DNA of 64,000 nt from Adineta vaga (GCA_021613535.1 CP075492.1:1488001-1552000); one strand, 5' to 3'; shown: positions 3,156 to 63,080, counted from the first letter of the stretch. Numbers and translations are program-made. Notes: generated from the sequence alone by a model not told the origin.

Positions 3156-3493
3156 AATATCCTTTTCGTAAAAACTTCATAATTGTCTAATTTTAGTAGC
3201 GGTGTCAGAGATAGGGATTGTATTGAACTAAAGTCACTCGCAGTAATTTAAGTTTTAACCTCACTTTTATCGCCATTCTCATCTTAAAAGTCAATTTCTG
3301 GTAAAATTACAAAGAACTTAGTTTTTCTCGATTTTTGCACATATTTTAGATAACCATTGACAATTTATAAAAAATAGTTTCAATCAATATTTTCAAAGAC
3401 GAAAATTGTCAATTACTTATTATTGACTATCCCTACAATATAAAGTATGTTTTTTGTTTCTTATTCATATTCGTTTTTTCTGACATAAAATAC

Positions 3494-3611
3494 AAGTAAC
3501 GCTCATCATACCGACTCATTTAACCCTCGACTGTAGAGAACGGGTATTTTTAGCTTGTCCCAATAGTGAGACGAATTGATCTAGTAACTTAATATACGAA
3601 AAAACGATTCA
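3494..3611 (+). repeat. Dispersed ~120-bp repeat, copy 1 (others at 28201 and 30378)
   Basis: Shares taacgctc..gactca..ctcga..ggtatttt..caatagtga.acgaatt.atctag.aa..aacgattca with the two other copies. Confidence 0.75.
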
Positions 3612-6419
3612 CATCTTATTATTGAAATATGTATTAACCTTCGAAAACAAAATAGTAACTTTTGCTTCGTGAAATCGATTACACCCAACACCCAGGTCCC
3701 TACTCCCCAAGATGATGATTTCCAACTAGCATTGACTGATGTTTTTTGACCTTTGACACTGACACAAATTTACAAACAAACTATTTTGTTTCATACGATC
3801 CTTCCGACAGTCGAAGGAATATGAAAGCACAGAGGTGTGGGCACCAAATTTTCTTGCCTCGCGATATCCGGTTCGTGGCGCTCGCTATCCAGACCCGTTC
3901 TCGTAAAACCCGAGAGAATTTTTACCCTAGACTGCAAGAATAAGATCTAGCAACGAGAATTCAATACGATATATCGGATCTGTCGATAACGCGGTAAAAG
4001 GGATCATTTTTTTAGTACAAAGTGATCGCTTGTACTGTGGAACTCACATATGTTTTTTGAAGAAAAATAAGTGTAAGTTTCAAGCCAAGAGATTTTTAGG
4101 CCCTTCCGCTACGTCTAACCTTTCAGACAGCGCTCAATTAAAGACAAGACCTTATTATTAACAGATTGTTGTTGCAAATGGTCTTTGTGAGTTCCACAAG
4201 TTAGCCACTTAAGAGCTACGCTGAAAGCTTCTTTTACACAAAAAGCGAAATAAGTTTCTACAGAAATCGCTATCATATGTGTTTTATTTTGGAAGTGGTA
4301 TGGATCAACTCTTATCTATATTTAAATACAGTTATATTCACATATAGATCTAGTTTAAAACCGAGTGGGTCGACTTTCAATGAATATTCTTTTTTTAGAA
4401 CATTTTCTGCATAATTCATCAATTTGCCACAAAACATGTTAGACAAGTTTTACAATTGATTAAATCCTCTATAATAGAAGCTTCCTGTTTGCAAAGCGTT
4501 TTTCAAAAGTTTTAGCAGTATTTTTTATCGTAAAATAAATGAAAAACAAGGCTTTTCGATAAAAATTTTATTCATTTTCCTAGTATCCAACGTAAAAATC
4601 TCAAAATCATAAAATTCCTGATGACTTTTTTAACACCTAAAACCTCTGTATATTGGATATCTTTATACAGTAACTAGTTTTCGCTAGGAATGAACCTCCC
4701 TATAGTGGACTTTCTCATACAATAATATATGACGAAGATTCATGACAGCCTTATAATATTTATATAAGAAATCTCTATGTGGAATGAAGAATGATTGTCT
4801 GCCTTTTTATTAAACATTCCACGGTGCTCTCCTAGATCTCAGGGAAGATCGACGGGGTACGGGAAGCGTGGGTAAAATTTCACCCAGGTAGTTTCGTGAT
4901 ACCTGAGGTCACTAAATTGCCCATGACACTTGCATATCTACAGAAAAACGTCGATAGGGGATGGGGAACGAAAGATAACTGAACTTCAACCTCATTTCGA
5001 TTAACTCATTTGATGGATCTTTAAAGTATCAATCTATCGTCATGCTTTCGCACTGGTCTGCTTGTCTTACACGGAAGTGAGGGTGATATAGGAGTAAAGT
5101 ACTCACTTCTACACAATATTCGTTGGACTATCGTGCTTCATCGTGGACGTGTGCGTGTTCGCGATAGATGAAACTTTAAGTTGGAGTCTTAGGCTTTTTA
5201 GGTGCGAACTGAAGTGTAGACAGAGTTGGAACGAGATCCATAAGAAAAAAGATGGATTTTGCAGCAGAAACTGTAAGAAATGGGTGGATTTGGAATGCTA
5301 CATAGTATAAGTTGCTCTATCTTAGATATATTTGGTAGGATATGTTGTGGTGATAGACAAATAATTTCAAGCTCAACTCTCTCTGAATCCCTTGTCGTTT
5401 TCTGACATATGGAGTCTTCCGTCGGGTATCTCCGCTAGTATAACTATATTTAATCAAATATTTAGTTTTCGAGAGTAGAGTTGAATGTGAGGAAGAGTAA
5501 CGATACCGAGTATAACGTGCTGTCCTATTCATTAGAAATGTTCAGATCAGCCAAGAAAACATTTATATCCAGTATAATAGAATTGCATTAGAAAATACCC
5601 GACCTCTATACTACAGACACTTTTGAAAAGTTACGACAGTATCCACTATAGCGATACTTCATTGTAATTGCATGACCAGCAGCTGATCGAACGACTATGA
5701 TATCATTCACTGTAGATGAACTAATTTTGATTTTCTTTCAAATATAATGATTCAATTTGAAAAAAGATAAGAAGTAAAGATATTAGGAAGAAATAGACTT
5801 TCGTTGATGCATCGAAATACTGAACTAATCATTCTTCACTATCCCAATATTCGTAAGAAAAGGATATCTATTATAACTTTTCACGGCTTTTCATTCTGCT
5901 CCAAAAATTTCGCGACCCGTTTGAACGCGTGTAAATCTAACCCCGGCGTACAACTCTGTATCAAAAGAAGAAAAATCTCTTACTACTATATTGCTTTGAA
6001 AAATGGAAGAAACAAGCAACTTTTTCATTAATGCTGAAGTATTTATTTCTGATCACAAAAACAAACTGGTAGAATAACATTTACCGATAGCTCATCTCGA
6101 GGCGCCACGAGGATTTCCACTCTGAGGGAGCTCAGCCAATCCAAAAAGATTACGTATTTATCAGTATAATCATGTGAGGAGTTTATTGTTTTCCATATTC
6201 ACCCCTGCCAAACCCCACGGCTCATATATGATCGATTCTTGTCTGAAAACAGAAAAAAAATCTGGATAGTTTCCACTTAATACAGTCGACTTGGATATAT
6301 AATTCTTCTTTACTTACTCGTTGAGACGATTAAATCCGGATAAATAGAGTCTATCTACAGTATAATTTATCGCTTGTTTTTTTGGAAGATTATCAAATCA
6401 GTTCTATTCCATATTTTAG

Positions 6420-7676
6420 TGGGAAAATTTCGCCGTTTTATTTCACAAATATGGCAAAAGTTTAAGGTGAGTATTCAAGATTTCAATCTATTTCCATCGA
6501 TTCCTCCATCGGAAAATGAACATGAACTTGAAAATCAACGTTTATCAACTCGATTATTTATTTTTCTTCTTATATTTTCATTAACCATTCTTCTTCTTTA
6601 TAATTCATTAATTACTATTACGCAAACTGTGAATATCAAACAACCAACAATGACAAAATATTTACAATTATATTCAACATATTCTCAAACATTAACATGT
6701 TCATGTACAAAAATATCGATTAATTATGAAAAATTTATTCAAATTAATTATACAATTCATCAAATATGTCAGAGTTATTTTGTTACACAACATTGGATTG
6801 ATTATTTATTTGCTTCTCGTGAAAATATATTTCTATATTTAGATGATTTTCGATCGTTTAGCGTTTATACATTTCAAGCAATACGTGCATTTTGTGATTT
6901 AGTTCAACAAACAATCAATAATCGTCTAAATGAATTTTATTCTAATAAATATATAAGTTCAATTCTTATTGCTTCTTCAACATTTAATTTTCAAATTAAA
7001 TCAATAGTTTCATCATTTATATCATCAATAACAAATGAATTTTTATTATCAATTTTAACAATAAGACAAATGATTCAAAGTAACGCTTTACTTTCTGCAC
7101 AATTAACAAATTATCGTCTTATAAAAAATACTGAAACTGTTTATATCAGTTCTGATACAACAGTTTTCGATCATTGTTACTGTGAACGTTCAGCTAAATG
7201 TAGTAAACAATCTCGAATTTATAATTATACAACTCTTTCACCTATTTATTACGTACCAGGTATGCCAATAGGATGTTATATCGTTGAAGCATTATTACAA
7301 TCAAATCTTCGTTGTTTTTATGATCAAATATGTTTAAATCGAGTAATGAACTATTTCTTTTTATCACCATCAATAAATATTACAGTTCTTGATCAATCTT
7401 TATTAATCAACTTTACAGTAAATTCAACATTTGAAAATATTTTGAATCAATTAATGGTTGAAGAATGGAATTCATCGATTTATTATGAGAATTATTATGT
7501 TGAGTGTGAACCATCACAATGTATTTATACTTATCAAACAAGAAATAATGGAATTTATATTATCACAGCAATTATTGGTTTAATGGGTGGATTGATTACA
7601 GTTTTGAAGATAATTTCACCACGAATTATCGATTTTATACGAAGAAATAAACAAGGAATAGGAATAGAAAAAATAG
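6420..7676 (+). CDS. Multi-module membrane protein, module exon 1 (TM1 / Cys-rich ectodomain / TM2); upstream exon not identified
   Basis: Lies in ORF 6374-7687. Acceptor ttttag|TG at 6419/6420 (phase 1) and donor ATAG|gtaaaa at 7676/7677 (phase 1). Hydrophobic segments RLFIFLLIFSLTILLLY and IYIITAIIGLMGGLITVLKII. Confidence 0.85.
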
Positions 7677-9083
7677 GTAAAATTTGAAAAAGAATATCTT
7701 CATTCGATTTGACTTTTTATAGATACGTTTCTTTATTGAATAGAATAACAACATAATGGGAAGAAAATAAGATAGACGAAATAGATCAACCCAATCAGTA
7801 AAACTAGCGCCTTTTCATGTCATTGATAATATAGTAGAATATCCTAACAGCTAAAGACTTAAATGATTTATTTAATAGAATAATCGAAAGAGTATAACGA
7901 TAGAAACACTATTTCTACGTATTCATCTTATGATTCGACTTCCTTTGGTTATTGATCGTAAGAACGAACGATTCAATCTGCAGAGAAAAAAATGGTATGA
8001 ACATTAAATAAACTCGTTATATGAGTAAAAATAACGCATGTTAATCAAAAAGAAAGAATTATTATAAAAAAATGACGCTCATCATTAGACCTTTTATTTG
8101 ATAGTGATATGTCTGCGAGTATATTCATTTCCAATACCATTTTCACACGTTTATACGATTGTATTTATTTATCAAATCTTATTTGTCTATTTTCATATTT
8201 AATAGTATTCAATCTGAAGTTCAAAATAAATACAAAGAAGTTTCTATTTATCTACATTGAGTAAATAATTTTAAAAAAAGAAACAAAACTAAGATGATTT
8301 TTATCTACTTATCGTATGCCAAAAGTAATAGCAATGACACTTTTGTGCAACTCACAAAGATTTTTGCGAAGAAAAAGAAGTTCTCTCTTTCTATGTCATT
8401 TGATCGTACTTCAACTAATATAATTATAATAAGATTTCCATAAGATCTGTTTTGTCCGCTTGTGTCACAGTTCTATGAGGGCTGGTGATTATTGTTTTCT
8501 ATAACTTTTAATATGAACAAGATAGATAAATGCAGTTTTTACTGTTGGAACGAGAAGATTGAGATACATCGAATCATATATTGGTACAGAGACGACCTTC
8601 TTAGAGTCTTAGATAAAATCAACATTCTTTAGTTGAGTCTTGCGAATTTTGTAGATCTTCAATTAATTGTTTGAATTTCTATGCGATAATTTAAAAATCC
8701 ACTCTAGAGAACTTATCCGATATGTTTATTCCTAAAACATCAACTGAAAGCGTAACAAAAAAACAGATAATAAAACGCTAAAGTATCTGATTCGATGTGT
8801 CTTCATCACGTCTTTTCAAAGATAAAAGCTACCGCTCTCTATCTTGTGCAAATATAAGTTTTATACATAATTTAATATAATCACATTAGTTGGAATAACT
8901 ATCACCAAATGAAATGGAAAGAGAGAGCTTCTATTTCTTTACGAGCCTGTAGAAAAAGAAAAGATTTTAAAGTCTAATATAAGATGTAAAACTGTCGTTA
9001 TGTTTATAAACAGAAATTATTTATATTAATTAAATTTTCAAAAACGATTTGTCAATTATTTCTATTTATTTATAAACCATCAG

Positions 9084-10331
9084 ATAATCGAACAACAAAT
9101 ACATCCAATGGAATACTATACAATTATACAATTACTTTTAACATATTTCCATCCATTCCTCCAACGGAAAATGAACATGAACTTAAAAATCAACGTTTAT
9201 CAACTCGATTATTTATTTTTCTTCTTATATTTTCATTAACCATTCTTCTTCTTTATAATTCATTAATTACTATTACACAAACTGTGAATATCAAACAACC
9301 AACAATGACAAAATATTTACAATTATATTCAACATATTCTCAAACATTAACATGTTCATGTACAAAAATATCAATTAATTATGAAAAGTTTATTCAAATT
9401 AATTATACAATTCATCAAATATGTCAGAGTTATTTTGTTACACAACATTGGATTGATTATTTATCAGCTGTTAAAGAAAGTGTTGGTCCACAATTAGATG
9501 ATTTTCGATCAACAAGTACATTAACATTTCAAGCAATCAGTACATTTTGTGATTTAGTTCAACAAACAATCAATAATCGTCTAAATGAATTTTATTCTAA
9601 TAAATATATAAGTTCAATTCTTATTGCTTCTTCAACATTTAATCTACAAATTAAATCGATAGTTTCATCATTTATATCATCAATAACAAATGAATTTTTA
9701 TTATCAATTTTAACAATAAGACAAATGATTCAAAGTAATGCTTTACTTTCTGGACAATTATCAAATTATTATTTATATACATATTCAAATGATATTTATT
9801 TGTATTCGTATCCAATAATACATGGAAATTGTAGTTGTGCAAGTTCTGCAAAATGTACGATTCAATCAGAAATAACAAATTCTTCTACAGGTGAAGTCTA
9901 TTTTTTCGTACCTGGAATTCGATTAGGTTGTTATATTGTTGAAGCATTATTACAATCAGATCTTCGTTGTTTTTATGATCAAATATGTTTAAATAAAATC
10001 TTATCATATTTTACTTTATCACCATCAATAAATATTACAGTTCTTGATCAATCTTTATTAATCAACTTTACAGTAAATTCAACATTTGAAAATATTTTGA
10101 ATCAATTAATGGTTGAAGAATGGAATTCATCGATTTATTATGAGAATTATTATGTTGAATGTGAACCATCACAATGTATTTATACTTATCAAACAAGAAA
10201 TAATGGAATTTATATCATCACAACAATTATTGGTTTAATTGGTGGATTGATTACAGTTTTGAAGATAATTTCACCACGAATTATCGATTTTATACGAAGA
10301 AATAAACAAGAAATAGGAAGAGAAGAAATAC
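9084..10331 (+). CDS. Multi-module membrane protein, module exon 2
   Basis: Acceptor catcag|AT at 9083/9084 continues in frame (DNRTTNTSNGILYNYTITFNIFPSIPP) into ORF 9284-10351. Donor ATAC|gtaaga at 10331/10332, phase 1. Confidence 0.85.
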
Positions 10332-11952
10332 GTAAGATATTTATAAAATAAGGATAATATGAAAAAAGTGAAATGCGTTTGTCGATGTGTAGTTTAAAGA
10401 GCAATCCGATTAAAGATGTGAATGTATTGCAAAATAGATGACTGTCATTTGATATCCATAAAAATAAAAAATCTGACAGTTAAGTTGTATAATTGATCAT
10501 CCTCTCCATTTTAAGACTTGAATGAGGTTTCTAGTGGTAACTGTAGTGGATAAATCTAAGTTGCACGAAGAGTTTTGAACAGGAAATTTCATCGTGAAAA
10601 ACTGCATTTAACAAATTTTTCGCGACAAAATAGCATAAAATGTAAAGTTGAGTAGGTGTATGATATAATATTGATGAGAATAAAGCGAATGGACGCATGT
10701 AAATTTCTATATAGTATATCTTGGTCTACTTTATAGAGTCGCATGTCTCATTTATCGTGAACGCAATAGACATTGTGTATATGATGCTTATACAATTCAT
10801 TTAAGAAAATAATAATATCTTAAGAATAGCGAAATGAACAGAAACACTTTTTGCTATTTCTAGATCAATAGTGCGTACGAAAGTTTATTAACTAATCTGT
10901 TCGAAACCAAGAGAGAAGACGCAAAGATATAACAGAGCATAGGTAGTTTGAACACAAAACAATATGAGAATACGACAGCAATTCTATCGAGAAGATCCTT
11001 TATAGACTAATAGAGACAAGATAAGAAGGATCAATCGTCTTCTCGTGACTCGTGATTACTAATAACGTTAGAATCTAATATTGTTGAGATTTATAGAAAA
11101 TGTGAAGTCAGTATCACTTCCACTTGAAGAAATATCGGCACCAGAAACTCTTACTGTTTTTGTTCTTTTTGTGCGTCTTTCTCAATTCACTCAGCCTTCG
11201 AGAAGCATTGTGTAGAATGGTAATTCATAGTCGTCAATATAGTTGTAAATAATTGACCTAAACTATCCTAACGGTCGCCCATAAAATAGAATGGAACGCT
11301 TCATTCGCATTCTGCGAACCACCACCATAGTCGATTCTGAGTTACGATTATGTTTTTAATTATTTGAAGTTGTTTGGAGATATTTGCACCATAGATCATT
11401 CCATGACTAATAGAAGGAACGCAAAAGGTGAAATTGCATTCAGATAAAGAACGAGAAAAACACGAAAAATCATGTATGATAGTGCCAACGTATAACATGT
11501 ATTGAAATGATGAATCTTAGGAAAACTCATCATAAGATAGACAAACTATCGTGCATTCGAAAGTGGAGAACTTACTTTATCAAACCGAACATAAATGAAA
11601 AATGCGAACATTTTGACAAAAATCGACTTTTTAGGGTGGAGCTCCTTAAATTCAGTCGAAATGTAAATGAGTCTTCGTCGACGAACGTTGTTTATTTCTT
11701 GTTATCTATTGGATGAATACACTGAAAAACAAAAATACTTTTGTAGAAAATTAAACATTTTCAAATACGCCTTTTTCTGTTCGATCGAATGAAATTTTGA
11801 AAAAATTTCGTAGTTTATAACCAATTGAAAACTATCGATAAGTTTCACGAAAGTACTCTAAATTGGTATTAAATTTTAAAGAAAACAATTTGGATAAAAA
11901 TTACCGTAAAAGTATAGTTCAATGTTTGAATAGGTGAATTTGATTGTTTTAG

Positions 11953-13235
11953 AATTAAATATCAGAGAACGAATTCATAAAATAAAAGACAAAATCAAGA
12001 TCATTGTTGTAAATCTTAATTTATTTCCATCCATTCCTCCAACGGAAAATGAACATGAACTTAAAAGTCAACGTTTATCAAGTCGATTATTTATTTTTCT
12101 TCTTTTATTTTCATTAACAATTCTTCTTCTTTATAATTCATTAATTACTATTACACAAACTGTAAATATCAAACAACCAACAATGACAAAATATTTACAA
12201 TTATATTCAACATATTCTCAAACATTAACATGTTCATGTACAAAAATATCAATTAATTATGAAAAGTTTATTCAAATTAATTATACAATTCATCAAATAT
12301 GTCAGAGTTATTTTGTTACACAACATTGGATTGATTATTTATTTGCTTCTGGTAGAAACGTTTTTCTTATATCCTATGATTTTCGATCAACAAGTACATT
12401 AACATTTCAAGCAATCAGTACATTTTGTGATTTAGTTCAACAAACAATCAATAATCGTCTAAATGAATTTTATTCTAATAAATATATAAGTTCAATTCTT
12501 ATTGCTTCTTCAACATTTGATTTTCAAATTAAATCAATAGTTTCATCATTTATATCATCAATAACAAATGAATTTTTATTATCAATTTTAACAATAAGAC
12601 AAATGATTCAAAGTAATACTTTATTATATTCGCAATTAAGAAATTTTATACTATATGCATATTCAAATGATGTCAACGTTTATTCATATCCAATGGTATA
12701 TGGAAATTGTAGTTGTGCAAGTTCTGCAAAATGTGTTTATATATCAGAAATGTACGATGTAGTTACAGGTGAAATATTATCCAATGTACCAGGTATGCAA
12801 TCAGGTTGTTATATTGTTGAAGCATTATTACAATCAGATCTTCGTTGTTTTTATGATCAAATATGTTTAAATAAAATCTTATCATATTTTACTTTATCAC
12901 CATCAATAAATATTACAGTTCTTGATCAATCTTTATTAATCAACTTTACAGTAAATTCAACATTTGAAAATATTTTGAATCAATTAATGGTTGAAGAATG
13001 GAATTCATCGATTTATTATGAGAATTATTATGTTGAATGTGAACCATCACAATGTATTTATACTTATCAAACAAGAAATAATGGAATTTATATTATCACA
13101 ACAATTATTGGTTTAATTGGTGGATTGGTTACAGTTTTGAAGATAGTTATACCACGATTAGTTACATATATGAAGATTTTAATTGAAAGATTTAAAAGAA
13201 AACGTGCTGCAGTCACACCAATGATTCAGAATTAA
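11953..13235 (+). CDS. Multi-module membrane protein, module exon 3 (terminal)
   Basis: Acceptor gttttag|AA at 11952/11953, phase 1, in frame with ORF 11934-13235. Unique C-terminal tail ending at TAA 13233-13235, with AATAAA at ~13362. Confidence 0.85.
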
Positions 13236-14357
13236 TTTCAATATGTTGACATCGAGAAAAAGCTCCATATAAAGAGTTTCATAAATTATTTTAAGAAACT
13301 ATCATATTTAATCTTTTTAAAAATACTTAAAATATTTCACATAAGAATATTCATTTAATCAAATAAAAATATTTTTGTAAAATTCTTTTATTTAATAGTG
13401 CCAATGTCAAAAAATTGAGTTGAACTATTCAAGCATTCAACTATATACTTGCGGCGTCGTAAGCGCGTGCACACATAGCATATAGATAACAAATCGCCCT
13501 ATGAAGGTGAACTGAGTAGTTAAATTCAACTTTCGAATCTTATATGTATAGTACTTGATAAAATCGATAGTCGATAGAGAATAATATGAGAATGATCTAT
13601 AATAAGGCGAAAATTCATGGTCGTATGGCGACGATTCTTAAGGGCGTGGATGAGACAAGCAGTCATGACCGATTTTGATCATATATCACAAAGATCAAAA
13701 TTGATCAATTTAAATAAATTCAAACTTGACTAGTTTATGATCAATTTCAAGCTACTTAAAATGTTTGCTTGCCCCTCTTCTTTCTTGTGAAGAAAACGTA
13801 TATATATATATGTTGAGAAAAAAAGGTGGAAGTAACCTATAGAACTATGAACGAAAGAAACGTCCCTATGATACATATGAATAACACCATATGCACAAAA
13901 AGGAAAGAAATAGTCATATATCCTTAGTTTTTTATTTGATGTAATCGTTTTCTTGTGTTATTTTTTCTGAACTTGTTTCTTGCATATTATATGCTTGTTA
14001 AGAAAAGAGAATTCAATTGTCTCATTGATGAAAGGTTTTCGTTTTTAATTTCTCATAGTAAAATCTGGTTGATTATCAGTATCAACAAGACTAGACATGT
14101 GTGAATATCCTAAAAAAGTACCGGATAGTTACCGAGGCGCTGGGTGGATGCTGAGGTGCTGCCGACACCCGGTCTGCACTTACCCTCATGCAGACCCGCA
14201 ATTTCCATTTCCTATACTCATCCTTTCAAGATTAAAAATTAGTTATTGCATAAAAGTCAATCTATTCATGAGAAAAAAAATTCCATTAACATTAACCGTT
14301 AATATTAATAGCATAAGATTCCGTTACAATTAGCAAATCTACTTCCATATAAAGTAT

Positions 14358-17906: not shown

Positions 17907-19496
17907 ATGAAAATTCTTCTGTATTCTTATTTTTTTCTTTTTCTAAGAAATGAAATATATTCTCAATATTTGTATCAATCTTTATATATTTTATCAAATT
18001 CTGGAACTCAATTTTCTCCATCAAATCGAGCAGCACAATTAATAAATTCAATATTTGTTAATTCATTGAAATTATGTGCTATTCAATGTAATCAAAATTC
18101 TTTATGTCGAATATTTGAATATGGTTCAATTCAATCCAATCAATGTTTACTTTTTGAAGGTGATTTAGATATTCAAGGTCATCTTATTTCATCATTGATG
18201 ACAAATTCTCAAGTTGGTATTATTCAAATAAAATCATCTCTTTTTATTAATTATGGTCAATCATGTTTAACTATTTGTTCACAAAATCGTTATTTAAAAT
18301 GTAATGATCATTTTCTATGTGATTGTATAGAACATACATATTGGAATTCATCTAGTCGAATGTGTCTTTCTCAAATGACAATATCAGGATCATTTTGTTC
18401 TCCAAATATGAATATGTGTCGTAATGATTTGAATTTAACCTGTTCATTTAATAATCAATGTATTGGTTAGTTGAATTGGCTTTTTTTCTTCAAATTATTT
18501 AAATACAAATCTTTTTTCTTTTTTTTTTAAGATAGCAGAATATCTACTTGGTCTAATGGAATAACAATAGCTGATAGAAATACAATCATACAAGGAAGTT
18601 CATCTGTTGGTCTTGATTATCCAATGGGAATTGATATTTATGAAAATAATAATGATGAATCATTAGTTATTGTTGATTCAACAAAAAGTGAAATTATTTC
18701 TATAGAAAATATTCTTTCAAATAACAAAACAATATTAGTTTTAATTCATTCTTGGTTAAATGATAATTTACAAAATCCAAGTGGACTTTTTCTTGATAAA
18801 AATAATTTATATGTTGTTGATTGTAATCAATTTCGTATTGTTTTATTTTCTTCAATGCAAACAACTGATCCATTACCACAAAATATAGCTGGAATTAAAG
18901 GAATGAATGGTAATCAATTACAAAGATTTCAATATCCTTATGGAATAATTGTTGATTATCAAAAGAATCTTTATGTTGCTGATACTTATAATCATCGAAT
19001 TATGTTTTGGTCAGTCAATTCTACTTCGGGAATTATTTTAACAGGTACAGGAATAATAGGATCAGGACCAACAGAACTTAGTGCTCCTTATGCAGTATTT
19101 CTTGATGAAAATAAAGGTAATTTATATGTAGCAGATAAAGATAATCATCGAATTCAATTATTTTATATAAATGATACAATTCCGCTGCACGGAATAACAG
19201 TAGCCGGAGGAAATGGACCTGGATCAGGAAGTCAACAACTTAATCAACCGACAGATATTTGGATATCAAAGAAAACTGAAACAATGTTTATTGTTGATTC
19301 AGGCAATCATCGTGTTCAACTTTGGAATATAGGAGAATCATCAGGTGTTACTGTTGCTGGAGATCCTAATGGTCAATCAGGTTCAGATTCTTCTAGAATG
19401 TCTTCACCATTTGGAATTACTTTTAATAAAAATGAAAGTCGAATGTATATTACAGATATTGGAAATAAAAGAATTCAATATTTTCAAATTAATTAA
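17907..19496 (+). CDS. Secreted PAN/apple + Cys-rich + NHL-repeat protein; exons 17907-18465 and 18532-19496
   Basis: Signal-like N-terminus, CAIQCNQNSLCRIFEY..QCLLF (PAN/apple), a Cys-rich segment, then NHL repeats (LYVADTYNHRI, LYVADKDNHRIQ, IVDSGNHRVQ). The intron joins the two ORFs in frame. Confidence 0.9.
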
Positions 19497-20329: not shown

Positions 20330-20615
20330 TAATCACCAATCTGAACAACTAATCTACATCTATGATTCATCCATATGACTCTTCTATTGATTTGATTTGA
20401 TGTCTCTAACAAAAACAAGACCTAACCAAGTGTTTTTCTTCTCTGTATAATATTCAGTATTTAGTTTCGTCACTTTCATCTACACTCAGCTTTTTTTTGT
20501 TGTTGCGAACAATATAAGATAAAACAGATTGATATTCAAGAATGAGACACGTTGTATAGTTCTTGTTATCTTTTTCATCAGTTTTGAGTTACATTTTTTA
20601 TTTAATATTATCAAC

Positions 20616-21821
20616 ATGAAACTATCTCTTCTTTATTCCTTGTTAATTTTTATATTAATAAATATATTGGTGAATACTCATATTCATTATTCTCGTTCTA
20701 AGTCTTCGTTAATCAATAACGAATCTTCTTTTCCTTTATTCAATGCTGCAGAAGTTAATCTAAAAATCCCAGCTATTGGTCTTGGACTTGGATTCTATGG
20801 TGGTAATAATGAACCATATGGTATATATCCTGAATGTGGTGCTGAGACACATGTTGATACTTCTGGTCATCTTAATCCACCACCACCTGGTTGTGGACTT
20901 AATACTCAAAAAGCAGTATATACATGGTTGAATAAAGTTGGTGGACGTCGACTTGATTGCGCTAATTCATACTATAATCATAAATCTATTGCTCAAGGTA
21001 TTCAACAAAGTGGTATTAATCGATCTGATATCTTTATTTTGAGTAAAGTTGGACCAACATTTGCTTTAGGTTATAATGATACAATCAATCAAACGATCGA
21101 TATTTTACAAGAACTTCAAACAACTTGGATTGATCTTTTACTTGTACATTGGCCAATTATGAAACATCCTGCTCAATCATATATACCAAAGAGTTCTGAT
21201 CCTCTATGTAATATGAGTAATCCATTGACATATAATGAGAAAAATTGTCGTCTTTCAACTTGGTCTGCTATGATAACATTATTTAATCGTGGAATAGTAC
21301 GTTCTATTGGTGTATCAAATTATAATATAACACATTTACAAGAAATTATCAATGCTGGAATGATATTACCAAGTGTTAATCAAGTTTCATTTCATCCCTA
21401 TAATTATCGAACTGGACGAACTGATTTACTTAAATTTTGTCAGAAGAATAACATTCAATTAATAGCTTATTCACCATTAGGAGTATCTGATGTACATCAA
21501 TTTCCAATAATATACAAAAGTAGAGCAACAGGCATGTATTCTACATTATTTCAAGATCCTTTGATTATTTCATTGGCTAGAACTTATGAACGTACTGAAG
21601 CACAAATCTTACTACGTTGGATTCATCAATTAGGTGTCGCATCTAATCCACGATCAATGAATGAAACTCATATGAGAGAAAATCTCGATATTCTCTCGAA
21701 TCCATTTACTATTAACGATGATGATATGATGCACATAACCAATCTAGCTCAAGATACATGTGAAATTGATTCGGATTGGTATCAATGTGTGGGAGATGGA
21801 AATCCTCCTTATAAATATTGA
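20616..21821 (+). CDS. Aldo-keto reductase with N-terminal signal peptide/anchor, intronless
   Basis: IPAIGLG, LDCANSY (catalytic D and Y), ILSKV (K), IDLLLVHWP (H), RSIGVSNY, PSVNQV, AYSPLG, AQILLRW. Hydrophobic leader MKLSLLYSLLIFILINILV. Confidence 0.93.
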   Translation: MKLSLLYSLLIFILINILVNTHIHYSRSKSSLINNESSFPLFNAAEVNLKIPAIGLGLGFYGGNNEPYGIYPECGAETHVDTSGHLNPPPPGCGLNTQKAVYTWLNKVGGRRLDCANSYYNHKSIAQGIQQSGINRSDIFILSKVGPTFALGYNDTINQTIDILQELQTTWIDLLLVHWPIMKHPAQSYIPKSSDPLCNMSNPLTYNEKNCRLSTWSAMITLFNRGIVRSIGVSNYNITHLQEIINAGMILPSVNQVSFHPYNYRTGRTDLLKFCQKNNIQLIAYSPLGVSDVHQFPIIYKSRATGMYSTLFQDPLIISLARTYERTEAQILLRWIHQLGVASNPRSMNETHMRENLDILSNPFTINDDDMMHITNLAQDTCEIDSDWYQCVGDGNPPYKY

Positions 21822-30502: not shown

Positions 30503-31325
30503 TCTTTCTCACCTACACTCATTTCACTCACACCTTTTAATGTATTTAAAGAAAAAAAATATTGTTTTTGTTGATTTTGAATTCTTCTTGTTTGCCGATT
30601 AATGAGTTTCCATGTTAATTTTGCGAAGGAAATATTCGTAGGTGTCGCCTGTTGAAACATTGTCGAAGAATTTGTTTCGTTTTCGCTCGATATGTTGCTG
30701 ATGATAATGTATAAATGTAAAAATTGAGCTAAAACTCAAGAAACTATTTAAAATTTTTTCGAACAAATTCAAAATGTATCTATCTCGTTGTTTTTCTTTC
30801 AATAATATTTTAAAAGAATAGATAAAAATCTAATATTCACATAGACATGAACCTTTGACTTGTAAAGAAGAAAAAAACATCAAATAATTAATTTTTTATT
30901 TAAAAATAATCATCAATGCTCTAGGAATGTAAATCTTACGAATAAATAGTATATTTCTTAATTAAAATCCTTGATAAAAGTGTTACATATTATAACATCT
31001 AAACTGCCATGTCATCGTGTTCTGTATGTGGTTAAAACAAAACTACGTCGGAATAAATTTGAATATTCTCTGTAGCAATAAATATGACCTATGAAGATCC
31101 GATGCCTCTTTAGTAATTAAATTTTGAAAAAGAAAATCTCTCTTACAACTTACTCAAGAAAAATCTTCTCAAAGAATAATAATATCATATTGTCAGTTAT
31201 CAAAACCTTTTGAAAAATTATAAATCTCTTTTTTTGACATAAACATATATAGATGATTGCAAATGACAAGTGAAAATAATTAATTTTATATTTCTTATCA
31301 AAAAGTTAAAAAAAAATATTCTTAC

Positions 31326-32288
31326 CGTACAATAAATATAAGTTAAAATAGATGCAAATAAACTAACAAAACTTTCGATTGCCGATCGATCAGCTGTTTT
31401 CTTTTCATTAGTTACAATTAACATGTAAACAACATAAACAGCATTAGGTAAATTGAATATAATATAAATGAGAACTTGTACAAATGAAAGTCTAGTTAAT
31501 TGTTTTTCTCTTTGTCGTTCTATACTATGAATATTAGATTCTTGACTTCTACCATCTTGATTACTTATTGCATTTATTGTAGTAGTTCTCATATGTGATC
31601 CAACAGTAGTTATTTGTTTTACTGGAACAATAATATTTTTCTCTCGACGTAATCTTAATGCACGAATATGTTTCATCATTAATAAAGTAAATATTGTCAT
31701 AATAATAATAGGTATAATTGCATCAATAGATATGGTACATACAGTTGTAAATGTACTGTAAAAACCTGCTTGTCGAATACAATTCGTTCCACTACTATTA
31801 TTTTCATAACCGATCAATGTATGAATATAAAAAATTGCCCAACTTAAACAAAATATTGGTATAAACCATTTGGCTATTTTAAAAGAACTTAATTGTCTTA
31901 TTGTAACATGAATTGATGTCATTAAAACTCGATCAATAGTAATTAAACATAAAAAATAACGTCCAATTGTTAAGGATAATCCTGATATATAAGCACGACC
32001 TTTACAATACCAAGCAACATTACGAGATGGATCAGGTATATCAAGTGTTGATAATATTCTTGTTAAAAGACCAATATTAATTGAAACAAAATTAGCAATT
32101 GACATAATAAGAAAATAGATTGAACATATACTTGTACGTAATGATTCTCGAGAAAAGACAAGAATATTAAGAATATTACCAATATTTCCAAGAATAAAAA
32201 ATGGACAATAGACGTATCGAGTAAGTTGTACTCGTACATCAGCAAAGATTCCTACTAAGACAGATGTTCCATTAGTTGTCGATGTCAT
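31326..32288 (-). CDS. Class A GPCR, main exon (terminal TM7/helix-8 exon unresolved)
   Basis: LGNIGNILNILVF, CSIYFL, WYCKGRAY, ITIDR and IFNLP. Donor ACG|gtaag at 31326/31325 falls inside TM7. Confidence 0.85.
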
Positions 32289-48685: not shown

Positions 48686-50925
48686 CTAAGTAGAAATAGG
48701 AGTTGGTGTGGGAGCATGTCCCAGTCGTTTCTTGAGGCATTCTACCTCACCACCATGCTTGCAAATGGCGACCCGCATCATGGCAAGTATATTGTTTGCT
48801 GCAATACTGTGATCATGTACACCGCCATGGAATGATACAGTGGCATCTTTGCCTATTTGACTTTTGAGCAGAGCTTGACCGCCTGGATGTGAATCAATAA
48901 AATTGCTGACATCATGAACGAAACCAGCGATCAAAACAAGTTGTCGATCGACATCCGTTTTGGCTAATTCCTGGTATTGTTCGAATGAAATGATGGGTAG
49001 CTGTGTTCTATCCTTGGGCCAAACAATATTTTCTCCAAACTTATCTAATGCTTTGCGCGTCATAGCGTATTGACCTTTTTGAATTTCGTTCTGGGGAAAT
49101 TTTTTTAGATTGCTGGCGAGACCGACTTTCTTCAAAATCCATATTACCCATTTGGTCGGATCGTACTGAAACCATAGAAGTGCATTGCGATAGTCGGATG
49201 GAAATTCATGGTGAAAATTGTGATATCCTTCGCCCAGTGTGACGAGAGCCGTGATGAAATGGTCTCGAGGTGAGTGCTTATCATCAAAAGGTGCATCGCC
49301 CAAATAGTGTGCTAGTGAATTGACGCAGAATGTTGAATGGTGAACAACTAGAAGACGAAGTACACTGGCGTAAAAGTATCCACCACGATAGTCACCCCAT
49401 CCAAGACCACACACGAGAATGGGAACAACAAAACCGACGATGATATTTAAAGAGAGAATGTTTTTGGATTGCCATTGAACACTCTTATCATTCGTAACAT
49501 CGGTCATATCAACGTAACCAGGAGGACGACGTGGTTTAAACAACAACCAGCCAATATGAGAATGAAAAAGACCTTTATGTGCACTGTATGGATCGAGATC
49601 GGTGTCCGTGTAGCGATGATGTGCTCGGTGACCACGTATCCACCAATGAGCAGATCCTTGAAGAGCACCTGCAGCTAGTGTGACTAAGACGTAGCGCAGT
49701 AACAAGGTCGCCTGGTACGATCGATGAGCGAAAAGACGATGATAACCAGCAGTGATGCCGAGTCCCGTAAGAAGGCCCCAAAAGAAGGTGAACATTGTCG
49801 TTTGCCACATGCCAACCGTAGTACAAATACCGTAAAGAGCGATAAATGGTTCACTACCAAGAACTATTACTTTAGGCCAATCGACTTGCTGGTACCAGTT
49901 CGACCAAGACATAGGTTGGAGTTCGGGTTCGTTCAGTAGGGTTCGCGCCACATAATTATTGTTGATAAAATATTCTTCCTCCTCGTTCGCAGTCATTTGA
50001 GGTTGCTGCATCGGTGAAAGTTCCTCAACAGTCGATATCGGTAAATCTAATGGCTTTGGTATGTAGGATATCACGACACGACGGCCTTTGATTCCATCAG
50101 CTGAATACATTACATCGTCTAAAAATACAGATGTAATACAAACTTTTATATTATTTAGACTATATCATTGATGAAGAAATATATTATACGCATAATAAGG
50201 CTCCGAGTCACATAATCGATCCTATACATCACATCCGTAAAACTAAGAAAGGTCAATTGTGAAAAGAGGTTAAAAAGAACTTAATTATTCATTCAATAAT
50301 CAAAGCAGACTATTTTTCAAATTGCGTCTCACTAAAGTACTATGCAGATGTGTTCGCAAAAATATTTCTTTCTCTACAGTGGAATCAAAATGTGTTAGTT
50401 TCAAATATCACTATAGCTACACTTGAAAATGTAAATCATCTCACATTTACTACTTAACTATAGTTATTCTGGAAAAAACATCGTGGAAGTTCGTTTGGAT
50501 TAACTTTTTCTTAAAATAAATGTGACCGTGTCTATTTTTAGTTTGCCCGACAAAGACGTTCAATGATGCTAAATTTGTTCTGTTCTTCAAAAAGCTAAAT
50601 GTCAAACCAATATTGATTTAGAAAAGCTTTAAAAATTTTTCATATTCTATTTAAACAGATAGAAATGTAAAGAAAATTAGTATCTAAAATAAAAAGACTT
50701 CTTCCATTTTTACCTCTCTTTTTCTCATGCAAATCAACTCAATTTGAAGGTGTCAATATCAAATTCTTTTTATTTCTTGTCTTGCTAATCAGAATAAAAT
50801 ATAATCCTTAGAAATATGAATACTTTAAATTTAAATTTTTCCAGAAGCATTTTGATTCTGATTTTTGTCTACTTATAACCTATTAGATAAAAAAATTGTA
50901 AAATTGATAACTCACTAGACATCAT
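48686..50925 (-). CDS. OLE1: Fungal-type delta-9 acyl-CoA desaturase with C-terminal cytochrome b5 (Ole1-like); main exon 50118-48686, putative micro-exon 50925-50916
   Basis: His boxes GYHRLFAH, HRAHH and GEGYHNFHH; DYRNA..QYDPTKW; cytochrome b5 HPGG motif at the C-terminus. GC clearly above the flanks. ATGATGTCTA|gtgagt joins in frame to ttttag|ACGATGTAATG. Confidence 0.93.
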
Positions 50926-53407: not shown

Positions 53408-54388
53408 TTAAGCAATATGTTGTGGACAACGACATACATTAAGCAGAACACGTTTTAATTCTGAACGAAAGGTTTTTGATACCAATATATTTGTATAAAA
53501 ACTAATCCCATTCTCAATAAAATATACGAAAGATGTTATTAACAAAATGTATTGTTCAATCAGTTGTTGTTCTACACTTTTTTCATTACGACGTGTAATT
53601 TCTTGATACATGTAACAAATTGTAATCGGAAATTTGAACAAAATAAAACTGACAAGTTCCACAAGTAGTATTCGAATCAATTGCCGATCTTTTGATTGAA
53701 GTATTCGTGGTCTACCAATCACAACAACAACAGCTGAATTTGATGTGCCGGACTGTTGCGTTGCACGGCTAATTCCACGAATATTTTTCACTGTCCAACA
53801 TCCAAAAATCAGCATGAGAACAGGTAGAAATAGACCATTGATAAAAAGTGAATAATAAGAGACGAATGTTGTATATGCACCTGGTTCATGAAAACAAATG
53901 AAATAATCAGGTCCATATTGCAGGATTCGTATATAAATTAATGCATGTACATGGAAAATTGCCCAAAATAAACATGTAACAATAATACTGATGACAATCA
54001 ATCGTCGTGTGCTAAGTCTTCTTGTTAAAGCATTTGGTGAAGTGACTAAAGTCCGATCAATAGAGGCTATAATTAGACAAGATGGTTCCCAACATGCGAG
54101 AACAAAGGCTATATAGTAACGGAATCGACAAAAGCCTATGTTCATTTTAGATAGATCAATATCATAACCAAATGTGAGCATTACAAAAAGAAAGCCCACG
54201 TAGAAGTAAATAAGATTCATACTATTGAAAATGATGAAACATATTGTACATGGATTTTTTCGAAGAGTATTCTGTGTAAATACCATTAGATTTAACACAG
54301 AACCTATAGTGCCAAAAGCTATGAGTATGGGACCACCATACTTAAATAGATTTTCTTGAAAGGAGTAGAGAAATGCTGATGTCGACAT
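53408..54388 (-). CDS. Class A GPCR, intronless
   Basis: GTIGSVLNLMVF, NPCTICF, FCRFRYY, ASIDR, KFP and FYTNILVSKTFRSE; seven TM segments. Confidence 0.92.
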   Translation of the reverse strand: MSTSAFLYSFQENLFKYGGPILIAFGTIGSVLNLMVFTQNTLRKNPCTICFIIFNSMNLIYFYVGFLFVMLTFGYDIDLSKMNIGFCRFRYYIAFVLACWEPSCLIIASIDRTLVTSPNALTRRLSTRRLIVISIIVTCLFWAIFHVHALIYIRILQYGPDYFICFHEPGAYTTFVSYYSLFINGLFLPVLMLIFGCWTVKNIRGISRATQQSGTSNSAVVVVIGRPRILQSKDRQLIRILLVELVSFILFKFPITICYMYQEITRRNEKSVEQQLIEQYILLITSFVYFIENGISFYTNILVSKTFRSELKRVLLNVCRCPQHIA

Positions 54389-61681: not shown

Positions 61682-63080
61682 ATGGGTCGTAAATCAACTT
61701 TCACTTTCAACAACACAACACGTTGGCATCTTGCATACGTAGTATCAAATTTATGGCGGCCATTCATCATCGGCAACAACTTTATTCGTACACACAGACT
61801 TGTTATCTATGGTGCACGTCAACATCTCTACTTTTCATCACAACCATCTCAATCTTATAATCGCTCACTACCCAAAACAAATTCTCTATTCACCCAACAT
61901 AACTCCCAGAATACAATCTCATCTCATAACCCACCCCAAATCTATGATATTTCACATTCAAATGAACAAGAACCACTCGAACAACCCGATTTGTCAAATT
62001 CCATATTAAATGAACATCAACAAAAACAATTATCGAATGTTATTCAGTCATTCCCACAACTGTTTACCAACACACCAGGACGTACAAATATAATAAAGCA
62101 TCATAGTGAAGTACAACCGAGTAGCAAACCATGCAACTCACCTCCGTATTGTTACGCTCCAGCACGCCGTCAAGTTATCGAAGAAGAACTCACTGCAATG
62201 TTAAAAGAAGGTGTCATTATTCCATCTAAAAGTTCATGGGCATCCCCAGTAGTATTGGCTCCTAAGAAGAATGGAACGATGCGTTTCTGCATAGATTATC
62301 GCAAACTAAATAATCTTACAATAAGGTATGCGTACCCATTACCTCACATCGACGATACCTTAGATTCATTACAACAAGCTCAGTTTTTCTCAACACTCGA
62401 CTTCCGATCTGGTTACTGGCAAGTTGAAATGGACGAAGCTAGTAAACCACTTACAGCATTTGTTACACACAGAGGTCTTTTCGAATGTACAGTTATGCCG
62501 TTTGGCCTTACAAATGCTCCAGCAACATTTCAGCGATTAATGGATATCGTATTAGCAGGACTTAAATGGCAATGTTGTTTAGTATATTTAGACGCTATTA
62601 TTGTATTCTCCACAACATTTGAACAGCATCAACATGACTTACGAAAAGTCTTTACTGCTCTATCCAAGGCAAACCTGACACTCAAAGTCTCAAAGTGCAA
62701 TTTTTGCCTTCCTGAGATCATATACTTGTGACACTTAGTCACATCTGAAGGTATTAAAACAACGACTAGTATTACCGCCTATTATGCAACCTCCAAACTT
62801 TTCTTATCCATTTATACTGCAATTGGACGCATGTGAATACGGTATTGGATGCGTACTTACCCAAGAATATGACAAACACACATGTGTTATTGCATACGCT
62901 AGCCGGACACTCAATACAGCGGAAAGAAACTACAGCGCAGTCGAACGCGAGGCTCTCGCTATCGTCTGGGCAACCAAACATTTCCGACAATATATCGAAG
63001 AAGGCCCAACCATCGTTCGTTCTGACTGTAAGGCCCTACAGTGTTTGAAAAGCACTCGAGATCCAACTGGCCGATTTCAA
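61682..63080 (+). pseudogene. pol: Gypsy pol remnant (RT + RNase H), inactivated
   Basis: SSWASPVVL, RFCIDYRKLN, MPFGLTNAPATFQR, YLDA (normally YLDD), a stop after EIIYL, LQLDACEYGIGCVL, ERNYSAVEREALAIVWA. No integrase seen. Confidence 0.9.

Follow-up and report, generated by a model that had tools for sequence, protein, structure and literature searches.

The window analysed here is a stretch of 64,000 nucleotides (nt) from the Adineta vaga genome (GCA_021613535.1, CP075492.1:1488001-1552000; positions are counted from its first letter), an AT-rich sequence (G+C 22-40%) that carries three direct copies of a module between 6420 and 13235 on the plus strand. The module belongs to a large, rotifer-specific family that lacks both a name and a Pfam model and on which we could locate no paper. 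The copies start 2655 and 2878 nt apart and share an ungapped register of about 372 codons, counted from the L/I-F-P-S-I-P-P codon (window 6488, 9143 and 12021). The initial annotation treated them as three receptors; most likely, they are the large exons of one gene that encodes a three-module, six-pass membrane glycoprotein. The features of this gene are as follows (a raised dot in a sequence marks an exon-intron border).

3363-3444, plus strand: 5' untranslated exon with a fixed 3' end at 3444, where the terminal A supplies the first letter of the start codon
3445-6419, plus strand: intron 1, GT..AG, 2975 nt, seen in RNA-like contigs, with a GTATGT donor at 3445
6420-7676, plus strand: exon 2, module 1; starts with TG, which completes the split ATG, and ends at the phase-1 donor G·GTAAAA
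6554-6619 (approximate), 6611-7549 and 7553-7615 (approximate), plus strand: transmembrane helix 1 (TM1), ectodomain and transmembrane helix 2 (TM2) of module 1
7677-9083, plus strand: predicted intron 2, 1407 nt, from a phase-1 donor to a phase-1 acceptor that is unique in the open frame ahead of module 2
9084-10331, plus strand: exon 3, module 2; has no ATG of its own and ends at the phase-1 donor C·GTAAGA
10332-11952, plus strand: predicted intron 3, 1621 nt
11953-13235, plus strand: exon 4, module 3, with a C-terminal tail of the terminal type; stop codon at 13233-13235

Intron 1 is observed directly. Contigs of two runs labelled as possible RNA (X13 and X24, from 2018 and 2024 and from different studies) contain 55-82 letters ahead of 6420 that map uniquely to 3415-3444, and the genomic borders are GTATGT after 3444 and TTTTAG before 6420; DNA run X1 reads uninterrupted through 6420. 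The join of 3444 to 6420 yields A·TG; the transcript has no earlier ATG, and this one is in frame with module 1. No unspliced, in-frame ATG precedes TM1 in any of the three modules. Introns 2 and 3 are predicted from splice signals. Module 1 ends with ..ATA G·GTAAAA, three codons ahead of its stop, and one X24 contig terminates exactly at 7676; the entry of module 2 is CATCAG·AT, in the sole compatible phase, and its exit is ..ATA C·GTAAGA; the entry of module 3 is GTTTTAG·AA. The predicted junctions (7676 to 9084 and 10331 to 11953) would both be phase-1 GT/AG joins that keep the frame, with a product of 1262 amino acids and three modules. The apparent stops of modules 1 and 2 lie 2-5 codons past a consensus phase-1 donor. 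Across the family, nearly all modules have a phase-1 acceptor 23 codons ahead of the module, the phase-1 donor G·GTAAG/A at codon 395-400 is found in first and second modules only, and third modules have a distinct tail, with endings like ..P-M-I-Q-N or ..P-S-I-E-T. The recurrent ..GK.. tail of single-module database proteins is probably produced by donor read-through, so that many public single-module "proteins" of this family are probably truncated models.

Several further observations concern the exons and introns of these genes. The C-terminal motif of third modules, (V/I)-x-P-(M/S)-I-(Q/E)-(N/T), located here at 13200-13235, does not occur in first or second modules; it may serve as a signal for sorting or docking. 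A TAG·TG acceptor, hence a split A·TG start, is present in the first modules of several arrays (L008, L012, L016 and L027). AG·TG is also present in two third modules (L019 and L014), where it would permit a start with a 5' exon ending in A, and a single-module isoform is possible. Intron 2 contains an imperfect inverted repeat (8511-8580 and 8784-8853; 70-nt arms, 71% complementary, 203 nt apart) that may be the remnant of a small transposon. At 7685-7705 and 9055-9073, contigs of DNA run X1 and of run X13 match for about 20 nt each and then diverge; in X13, the two matches are 214 nt apart within one 1922-nt contig. These contigs may derive from a related locus, or intron 2 may be shorter in one haplotype.

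The three modules are nearly identical over most of their length, as the initial annotation had observed. In the framework (268 codons, 804 sites, synonymous sites counted), module 1 differs from the other two at 16-19 nucleotides and module 2 from module 3 at 12; the synonymous divergence (dS) is 0.03-0.056, and the ratio of nonsynonymous to synonymous divergence (dN/dS) is 0.20-0.36 (Nei-Gojobori estimates here and below). Two blocks, V1 and V2, depart sharply from this pattern, with 27-60% of the sites different per 30-nt window between the three copies and no indels. V2, taken as module residues 198-263 (66 codons), has a dS of 0.45-1.2 and a dN/dS of 0.45-0.73; V1 (residues 107-120, 14 codons) has a dS of 0.26-0.65 and a dN/dS of 0.52, 1.83 and 2.12 in the three pairs. 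The variable blocks and the smaller pieces of the mosaic are located as follows.

6806-6847, plus strand: V1 of module 1 (module residues 107-120), the loop immediately preceding the first long ectodomain helix
9461-9502, plus strand: V1 of module 2
12339-12380, plus strand: V1 of module 3
7088-7273, plus strand: V2 of module 1 (module residues 201-262), the loop following the second long helix and four beta strands
9743-9928, plus strand: V2 of module 2
12621-12806, plus strand: V2 of module 3
6848-6889, plus strand: minor mosaic piece (residues 121-134), the same in modules 2 and 3, unlike in module 1
7337-7366, plus strand: minor mosaic piece (residues 284-293), the same in modules 2 and 3, unlike in module 1

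Thus, the two indel-free blocks of the initial annotation stand, but they do not exhaust the mosaic: apart from the two minor pieces, the tail past TM2 is similar in modules 1 and 2 and distinct in module 3, and the approximately 23 codons preceding the module are dissimilar in all three copies. The fixed residues that had been listed for V2 are all present. Of the proposed composition of the blocks, the richness in tyrosine holds; family-wide, serine and asparagine are not enriched and isoleucine is depleted, and the residues enriched in the variable blocks are Tyr, Gly, Asp, Ala and Pro.

The contrast between the blocks and the framework extends to synonymous sites (Fisher p from 1e-7 to 1e-14 for synonymous differences in V2 versus the framework), and in a Sawyer-type run test with 741 polymorphic sites, none of 10000 permutations reached the longest identity runs observed. 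Apart from chance matches of 23-37 nt, there is no similarity among the spacers (7688-9142 and 10352-12020) or the flanks, which indicates that the triplication is old. The synonymous divergence of V2 is at the level observed between unrelated loci of the family (median proportion of differing synonymous sites, pS, 0.62), and a genome-wide search for donors of all three V2 blocks identified none closer than the sister modules (69-76% identity), so that these blocks do not appear to have been recently imported. Positive selection cannot raise synonymous divergence tenfold, whereas conversion can lower that of the framework. Two signs of concerted evolution with diverged islands, a sharp synonymous shift along the gene and unrelated flanks, are found here. 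These results show that the framework has been homogenised by gene conversion and that recent point mutation is not the cause of the mosaic, in agreement with the initial annotation: framework dS is 10-20 times lower than that of V2.

A search of the 100.8-Mb, six-piece genome assembly, in which 104 modules were scored from 1060 first-look candidates, reveals at least 104 modules of this family in 44 loci, namely 27 triplets, 6 pairs and 11 singles, with no locus exceeding three. The array analysis draws on 30 of the loci found, with 11 readable arrays, nine of them tabulated codon by codon. In all 11 readable arrays, the array mates are mutual nearest relatives, with 53-88% amino-acid identity. 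Over residues 8-103 (TM1 to W-I-D-Y-L), most mate pairs in 9 of the 11 arrays have a pS of 0.00-0.10, even where the rest of the gene has a pS of 0.3-0.55; between arrays, the median pS of this segment is 0.48 and the minimum 0.31. Within arrays, the pS of V1 and V2 is 0.15-0.73, and 27-77% of the sites differ in the V1 core (residues 111-120) and the V2 core (211-220) in all 19 tabulated within-array pairs. Thus, V1 and V2 escape overwriting in each of the nine tabulated arrays, and the same mosaic recurs among the modules of one Adineta ricciae gene. The two blocks are also the entropy peaks of the whole family (2.5-2.95 bits versus 0.7-1.8 elsewhere within the module), with indels in other members, which bears out the special status that they had been given from the sequence of this locus.

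Sequence searches started with the module detect 201 proteins at E ≤ 0.001 (best 2.4e-195), with similarity over the whole module, and the family profile identifies 3923 cluster representatives, the best of which have 1200-1290 residues and three matched stretches. Annotated proteins of A. ricciae and Rotaria are among these. Every named protein relative belongs to a bdelloid rotifer (Adineta steineri, A. ricciae, A. vaga or Rotaria). Relatives of 1261-1276 amino acids contain three matched stretches. In the same genome, C2 carries a 1260-codon open frame with three modules; in the A. ricciae gene, each of the three exons encodes one module, and the introns between them (184 and 173 nt) are at equivalent places; and an ENA metagenome contig (ctg21219l, 191-4021, L033) encodes three modules in one uninterrupted 1276-codon frame. 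The modules of L033 are fully diverged from each other, so that homogenisation is not universal in the family. The closest points of comparison are unnamed homologues, CAF1323976 of A. ricciae (UniRef A0A815FII2, 1261 amino acids) and CAF4621706 of Rotaria sp. Silwood1 (1205 amino acids), which share with the present gene the same invariant cysteines and the three-module build predicted for it, and in the case of A. ricciae, also the mosaic and the predicted places of the inter-module introns; they differ in that the identity is only 45-57% and the introns are about 180 nt long or missing, compared to 1.4-3 kb here. All three modules contain the invariant ectodomain cysteines C93, C95, C116, C158, C285, C298, C304, C362 and C367, as well as C252, C254 and C260, which are nearly invariant in the family. 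Literature searches revealed no description of the family (a Penelope paper deals with different families), and Pfam searches started with the three modules and 101 family members gave nothing credible, consistent with the earlier statement that no functional description was known.

An AlphaFold2 model of the module (101 sequences; predicted local distance difference test, pLDDT, 87.6; predicted TM-score, pTM, 0.74) contains, in this order, a basic N-terminal helix, a long TM1, the ectodomain and a long TM2; the ectodomain modelled alone reaches a pLDDT of 94 and a pTM of 0.87. The ectodomain (about 313 residues) is rich in cysteines and contains NxS/T sequons; in the model, two helices, 32 and 36 residues long, form a hairpin. 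The loop that leads into the first of these helices is V1, and V2 begins right after the second and runs through four strands, so that, by topology, both blocks start at the same end of the hairpin. A Foldseek search against solved structures, started with either the module or the ectodomain, yields no match at E ≤ 0.001; the best VIA-align hits in the same set have Z scores of 6.9 for the module, over membrane helices only, and 4.2 for the ectodomain. In these comparisons, the alignments were confined to helical hairpins and membrane helices. The clusters of predicted structures that match credibly are all from rotifers. The ectodomain is thus predicted to adopt a new fold, without a match among solved structures. 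Apart from rotifer clusters, the Atlas, searched by shape and by features, gave weak leads that were not accepted: Y80K_N (PF27811, ciliate 80-kDa proteins), with language-model features at 0.77, a shape TM-score of 0.30 and no hmmscan match at E ≤ 1; ERGIC/ERV; and Wzz, discussed below. There is no immunoglobulin family of Pfam among the 101 members and no immunoglobulin match in the fold searches, so that the term "CDR-like" used for the blocks is an analogy only.

Co-folding of three copies of the module 1 ectodomain gives a score of 0.93, whereas the best of three controls scores 0.00. The mark was reached by 21 of 30 proteins solved as one-chain pairs and by none of 23 single-chain proteins (17 of 29 and none of 30, respectively, for eukaryotes). 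The runs agree on at least 97% of the contacts, with a partner pLDDT of at least 89. The predicted interface is built by the two long helices, and ectodomain residues 150-163, which comprise the nearly invariant Q-S-N-x-L motif and the beginning of V2, touch their own counterparts, which places them on the axis. About 21 of the 62 V2 residues belong to this interface, from which V1 is almost absent; the view of the variable blocks as exposed surface accordingly requires amendment, given that the prediction puts some of V2 where the modules touch and not simply on a free outer face. Together, the predicted trimer, the triplet rule and the fused architecture suggest a single-chain pseudo-trimer in which three different V2 starts would meet at the axis.

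The three-copy arrangement is real and not an artefact of assembly, as confirmed by reads: eight runs from four studies contain 69-84% of the 31-letter words sampled from 6100-13300, and in a DNA run from 2015, exact contigs over the unique spacers have a depth of about 19.7 and framework pieces a depth of 43-76, as expected for several near-identical copies, with V1 of module 1 covered exactly by one contig. It is true that short-read contigs break within the framework, so that its sequence cannot be proved copy by copy from contigs. An identical framework that is merely a consensus laid over collapsed copies during assembly or polishing is nevertheless extremely improbable, considering that the unique parts are exact at single-copy depth with framework pieces 2-4 times deeper, that the copies still differ at scattered framework sites, and that the same pattern appears in other arrays of this genome and in the assembly of another species. 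One framework piece, 9297-9418, has a depth of 76.5 in DNA run X1 versus about 19.7 in its single-copy flanks, which corresponds to roughly four copies, not three; the excess may stem from an extra copy on the other haplotype or elsewhere. As for the number of genes, three tandem units, each encoding a two-pass protein of about 420 residues that perhaps trimerises post-translationally, would accommodate the facts that every module is a long open frame with a stop, that many database entries are single-module proteins of 400-470 amino acids, that some third modules of other arrays possess an in-frame ATG or an AG·TG acceptor, and that the reads include no inter-module joint. Such an arrangement seems improbable given that no in-frame ATG precedes TM1 in modules 2 and 3, the apparent stops of the first two modules come a few codons after a consensus donor whose read-through gives the ..GK.. 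tail, the type of tail is set by the position in the array, and both three-module gene models and continuous three-module frames are known. Taken as a whole, one three-module gene with conversion, diverged V1 and V2 and a predicted hetero-trimer appears rather probable to us. Several observations count against it. No read joins 7676 to 9084 or 10331 to 11953, and RNA coverage consists of a few contigs at a depth of 2-4, too thin for the missing joints to weigh against introns 2 and 3. The predicted introns of 1.4-1.6 kb are long compared to the 173-184 nt of the A. ricciae relative, yet intron 1 has 3 kb; the acceptor of module 2 lies at codon -20 instead of -23, and its pyrimidine tract is weak. 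The dN/dS of V2 is below 1, and selection for difference is argued from the pattern. Finally, the calibration of the trimer was made on two copies of microbial proteins, and the trimer model does not draw on the family alignment, comprises three copies of one module without membrane helices and conveys model confidence, not a measurement.

The origin of the mosaic itself admits two further explanations. A recent triplication after which V1 and V2 alone changed very fast, by local hypermutation or under strong positive selection and with no conversion, would fit the sharp edges of the blocks, the V1 dN/dS above 1 in two of three pairs and the absence of a V2 donor elsewhere in the genome. It is nonetheless very improbable: the spacers and the 23 pre-module codons are unrelated, which makes the duplication old; synonymous sites of V2 have diverged as between unrelated family loci; the patchwork, with modules 2 and 3 alike and unlike module 1 in two pieces and module 1 like module 2 but not 3 in the tail, needs exchange; and arrays with old bodies still carry identical 5' parts. 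Conversion being accepted, the question becomes why V1 and V2 escape it. Diversifying selection, as the initial annotation had proposed for both blocks, finds little expression in the substitution rates, given that dN/dS in V2 is below 1 with a high dS and exceeds 1 only in the 14 codons of V1 in two of three pairs; this comes close to the outcome that the initial annotation had named as its refutation, although synonymous divergence does not equal the nonsynonymous one but still exceeds it. The blocks are near saturation, which makes this a weak test. A plausible, if less favoured, possibility is that V1 and V2 are simply the least constrained loops, which diverged first and now block heteroduplex formation, so that conversion tracts stop at their edges without any selection. 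The low dN/dS and high dS of V2 agree with such neutral islands, as do the low conservation of both blocks family-wide with indels in other members, the occasional entry of conversion into the second half of V2 (arrays C1_1589 and C5_256), and the complete drifting apart of all three modules in L033. On the other side, the V1 island between modules 2 and 3 measures only 42 nt, with 20 differences, amid flanks of 318 and 240 nt at about 98-99% identity; the same cores are at least 27% different in 19 of 19 within-array pairs, in every tabulated array, although the flanks are repeatedly wiped clean; and the cysteines and several other residues of V2 are fixed, so that the block is not free of constraint. 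On balance, we lean slightly towards selection that keeps the three modules different at V1 and V2, given that each protein then carries three different sets of loops; a small share of the probability goes to causes other than selection or a neutral barrier.

Under this preferred reading, each large exon would encode a short basic cytosolic helix, TM1, an ectodomain and TM2; joined across phase-1 introns, the modules would form a protein of 1262 residues that crosses the membrane six times. Its three ectodomains would pack around a pseudo-threefold axis via the long helical hairpins, forming a covalently linked hetero-trimer. Non-reciprocal recombination among the modules keeps most of their DNA alike, most strongly over the first 300 nt; V1 and V2 are never overwritten and are as old as the divergence between family loci. 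The cysteine-rich ectodomain with glycosylation sequons, the hypervariable loops, the huge lineage-specific family and the tandem, fast-turnover loci point to a putative surface protein of receptor or channel type that would encounter diverse ligands, with a putative role in recognising something outside the cell. Bdelloids are animals without canonical adaptive immunity, and gene conversion and large lineage-specific gene families are well-known features of their genomes. The boldest form of the proposal, which we put forward tentatively and consider unlikely to hold in every part, is that these proteins constitute an unrecognised kind of surface protein, with dozens to hundreds of genes in bdelloids, that combines a single-chain hetero-trimer, a new fold, a scaffold kept by conversion and selected loop sets at the axis. 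If so, each protein would present a germline-encoded combinatorial recognition site, or the entrance of a gated pore, with which microbes, food or kin might be sensed. The family also offers a clean natural case of conversion versus divergence within one gene, repeated across arrays so that the tract edges are open to statistics, and a direct way to study how recognition surfaces remain diverse in asexual animals.

The rest of the window contains genes of other kinds. Two intronless open reading frames encode seven-transmembrane receptors of the rhodopsin family (Pfam 7tm_1; 31218-32288 and 53408-54388, both on the minus strand); in addition, there are a fatty-acid desaturase fused to cytochrome b5 (48686-50110, minus strand), an NHL-repeat protein (18624-19496, plus strand) and a retroelement reverse transcriptase (RVT_1; 61682-62731, plus strand). 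The open reading frame at 20529-21821 (plus strand) is similar to the module in length but encodes an aldo-keto reductase and is not a member of the family. Rfam and tRNA scans of the window gave no hits.

Among known systems, the trimeric channels P2X, ASIC/ENaC/FaNaC and PAC (TMEM206) resemble the module in having two membrane helices around a large, disulphide-rich ectodomain and, as predicted here, three units around an axis. They differ in fold (Z 5.8 for FaNaC1, 8on7, and Z 6.1 for PAC, 7ji3, with 65-69 residues aligned) and in that the three units described here are fused in one chain; neither the Foldseek search nor the ectodomain Z scores given above place the module in any of these families, and channel activity is pure conjecture. 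To our knowledge, no counterpart of such a fused three-unit, six-pass protein has been described in the two-pass trimeric channels or receptors. The bacterial Wzz co-polymerases (PF02706) have a similar layout, with a membrane helix, an alpha/beta domain containing a long helical hairpin and another membrane helix, and form oligomers. However, they are bacterial and lack the cysteines of the module, and the weak shape match (TM-score 0.29-0.31), accompanied by no Pfam match here, was not accepted as an identification. With respect to the mode of evolution, the WD40, ANK and TPR repeats of fungal NLR/HET proteins are kept near-identical by recombination, with differences at a few surface positions, and this variation has been interpreted as a recognition repertoire. 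These repeats consist of 30-40 residues and are intracellular, in contrast to the 420-residue two-pass units with an extracellular domain found here, and have no sequence or fold relation to the present modules. Close parallels for the mosaic are interlocus conversion between the tandem paralogues TLR1/TLR6 in mammals (PMC2077338) and HMA4 in Arabidopsis halleri (bioRxiv 10.1101/2025.10.29.685298), where most of the coding sequence is reported to be homogenised, some stretches are diverged and the paralogues are mutually closest, as in the rotifer arrays. The proteins are unrelated, the repeats in A. vaga are apparently exons of one gene, and the pattern recurs in every array examined in detail, among dozens of loci of the family.

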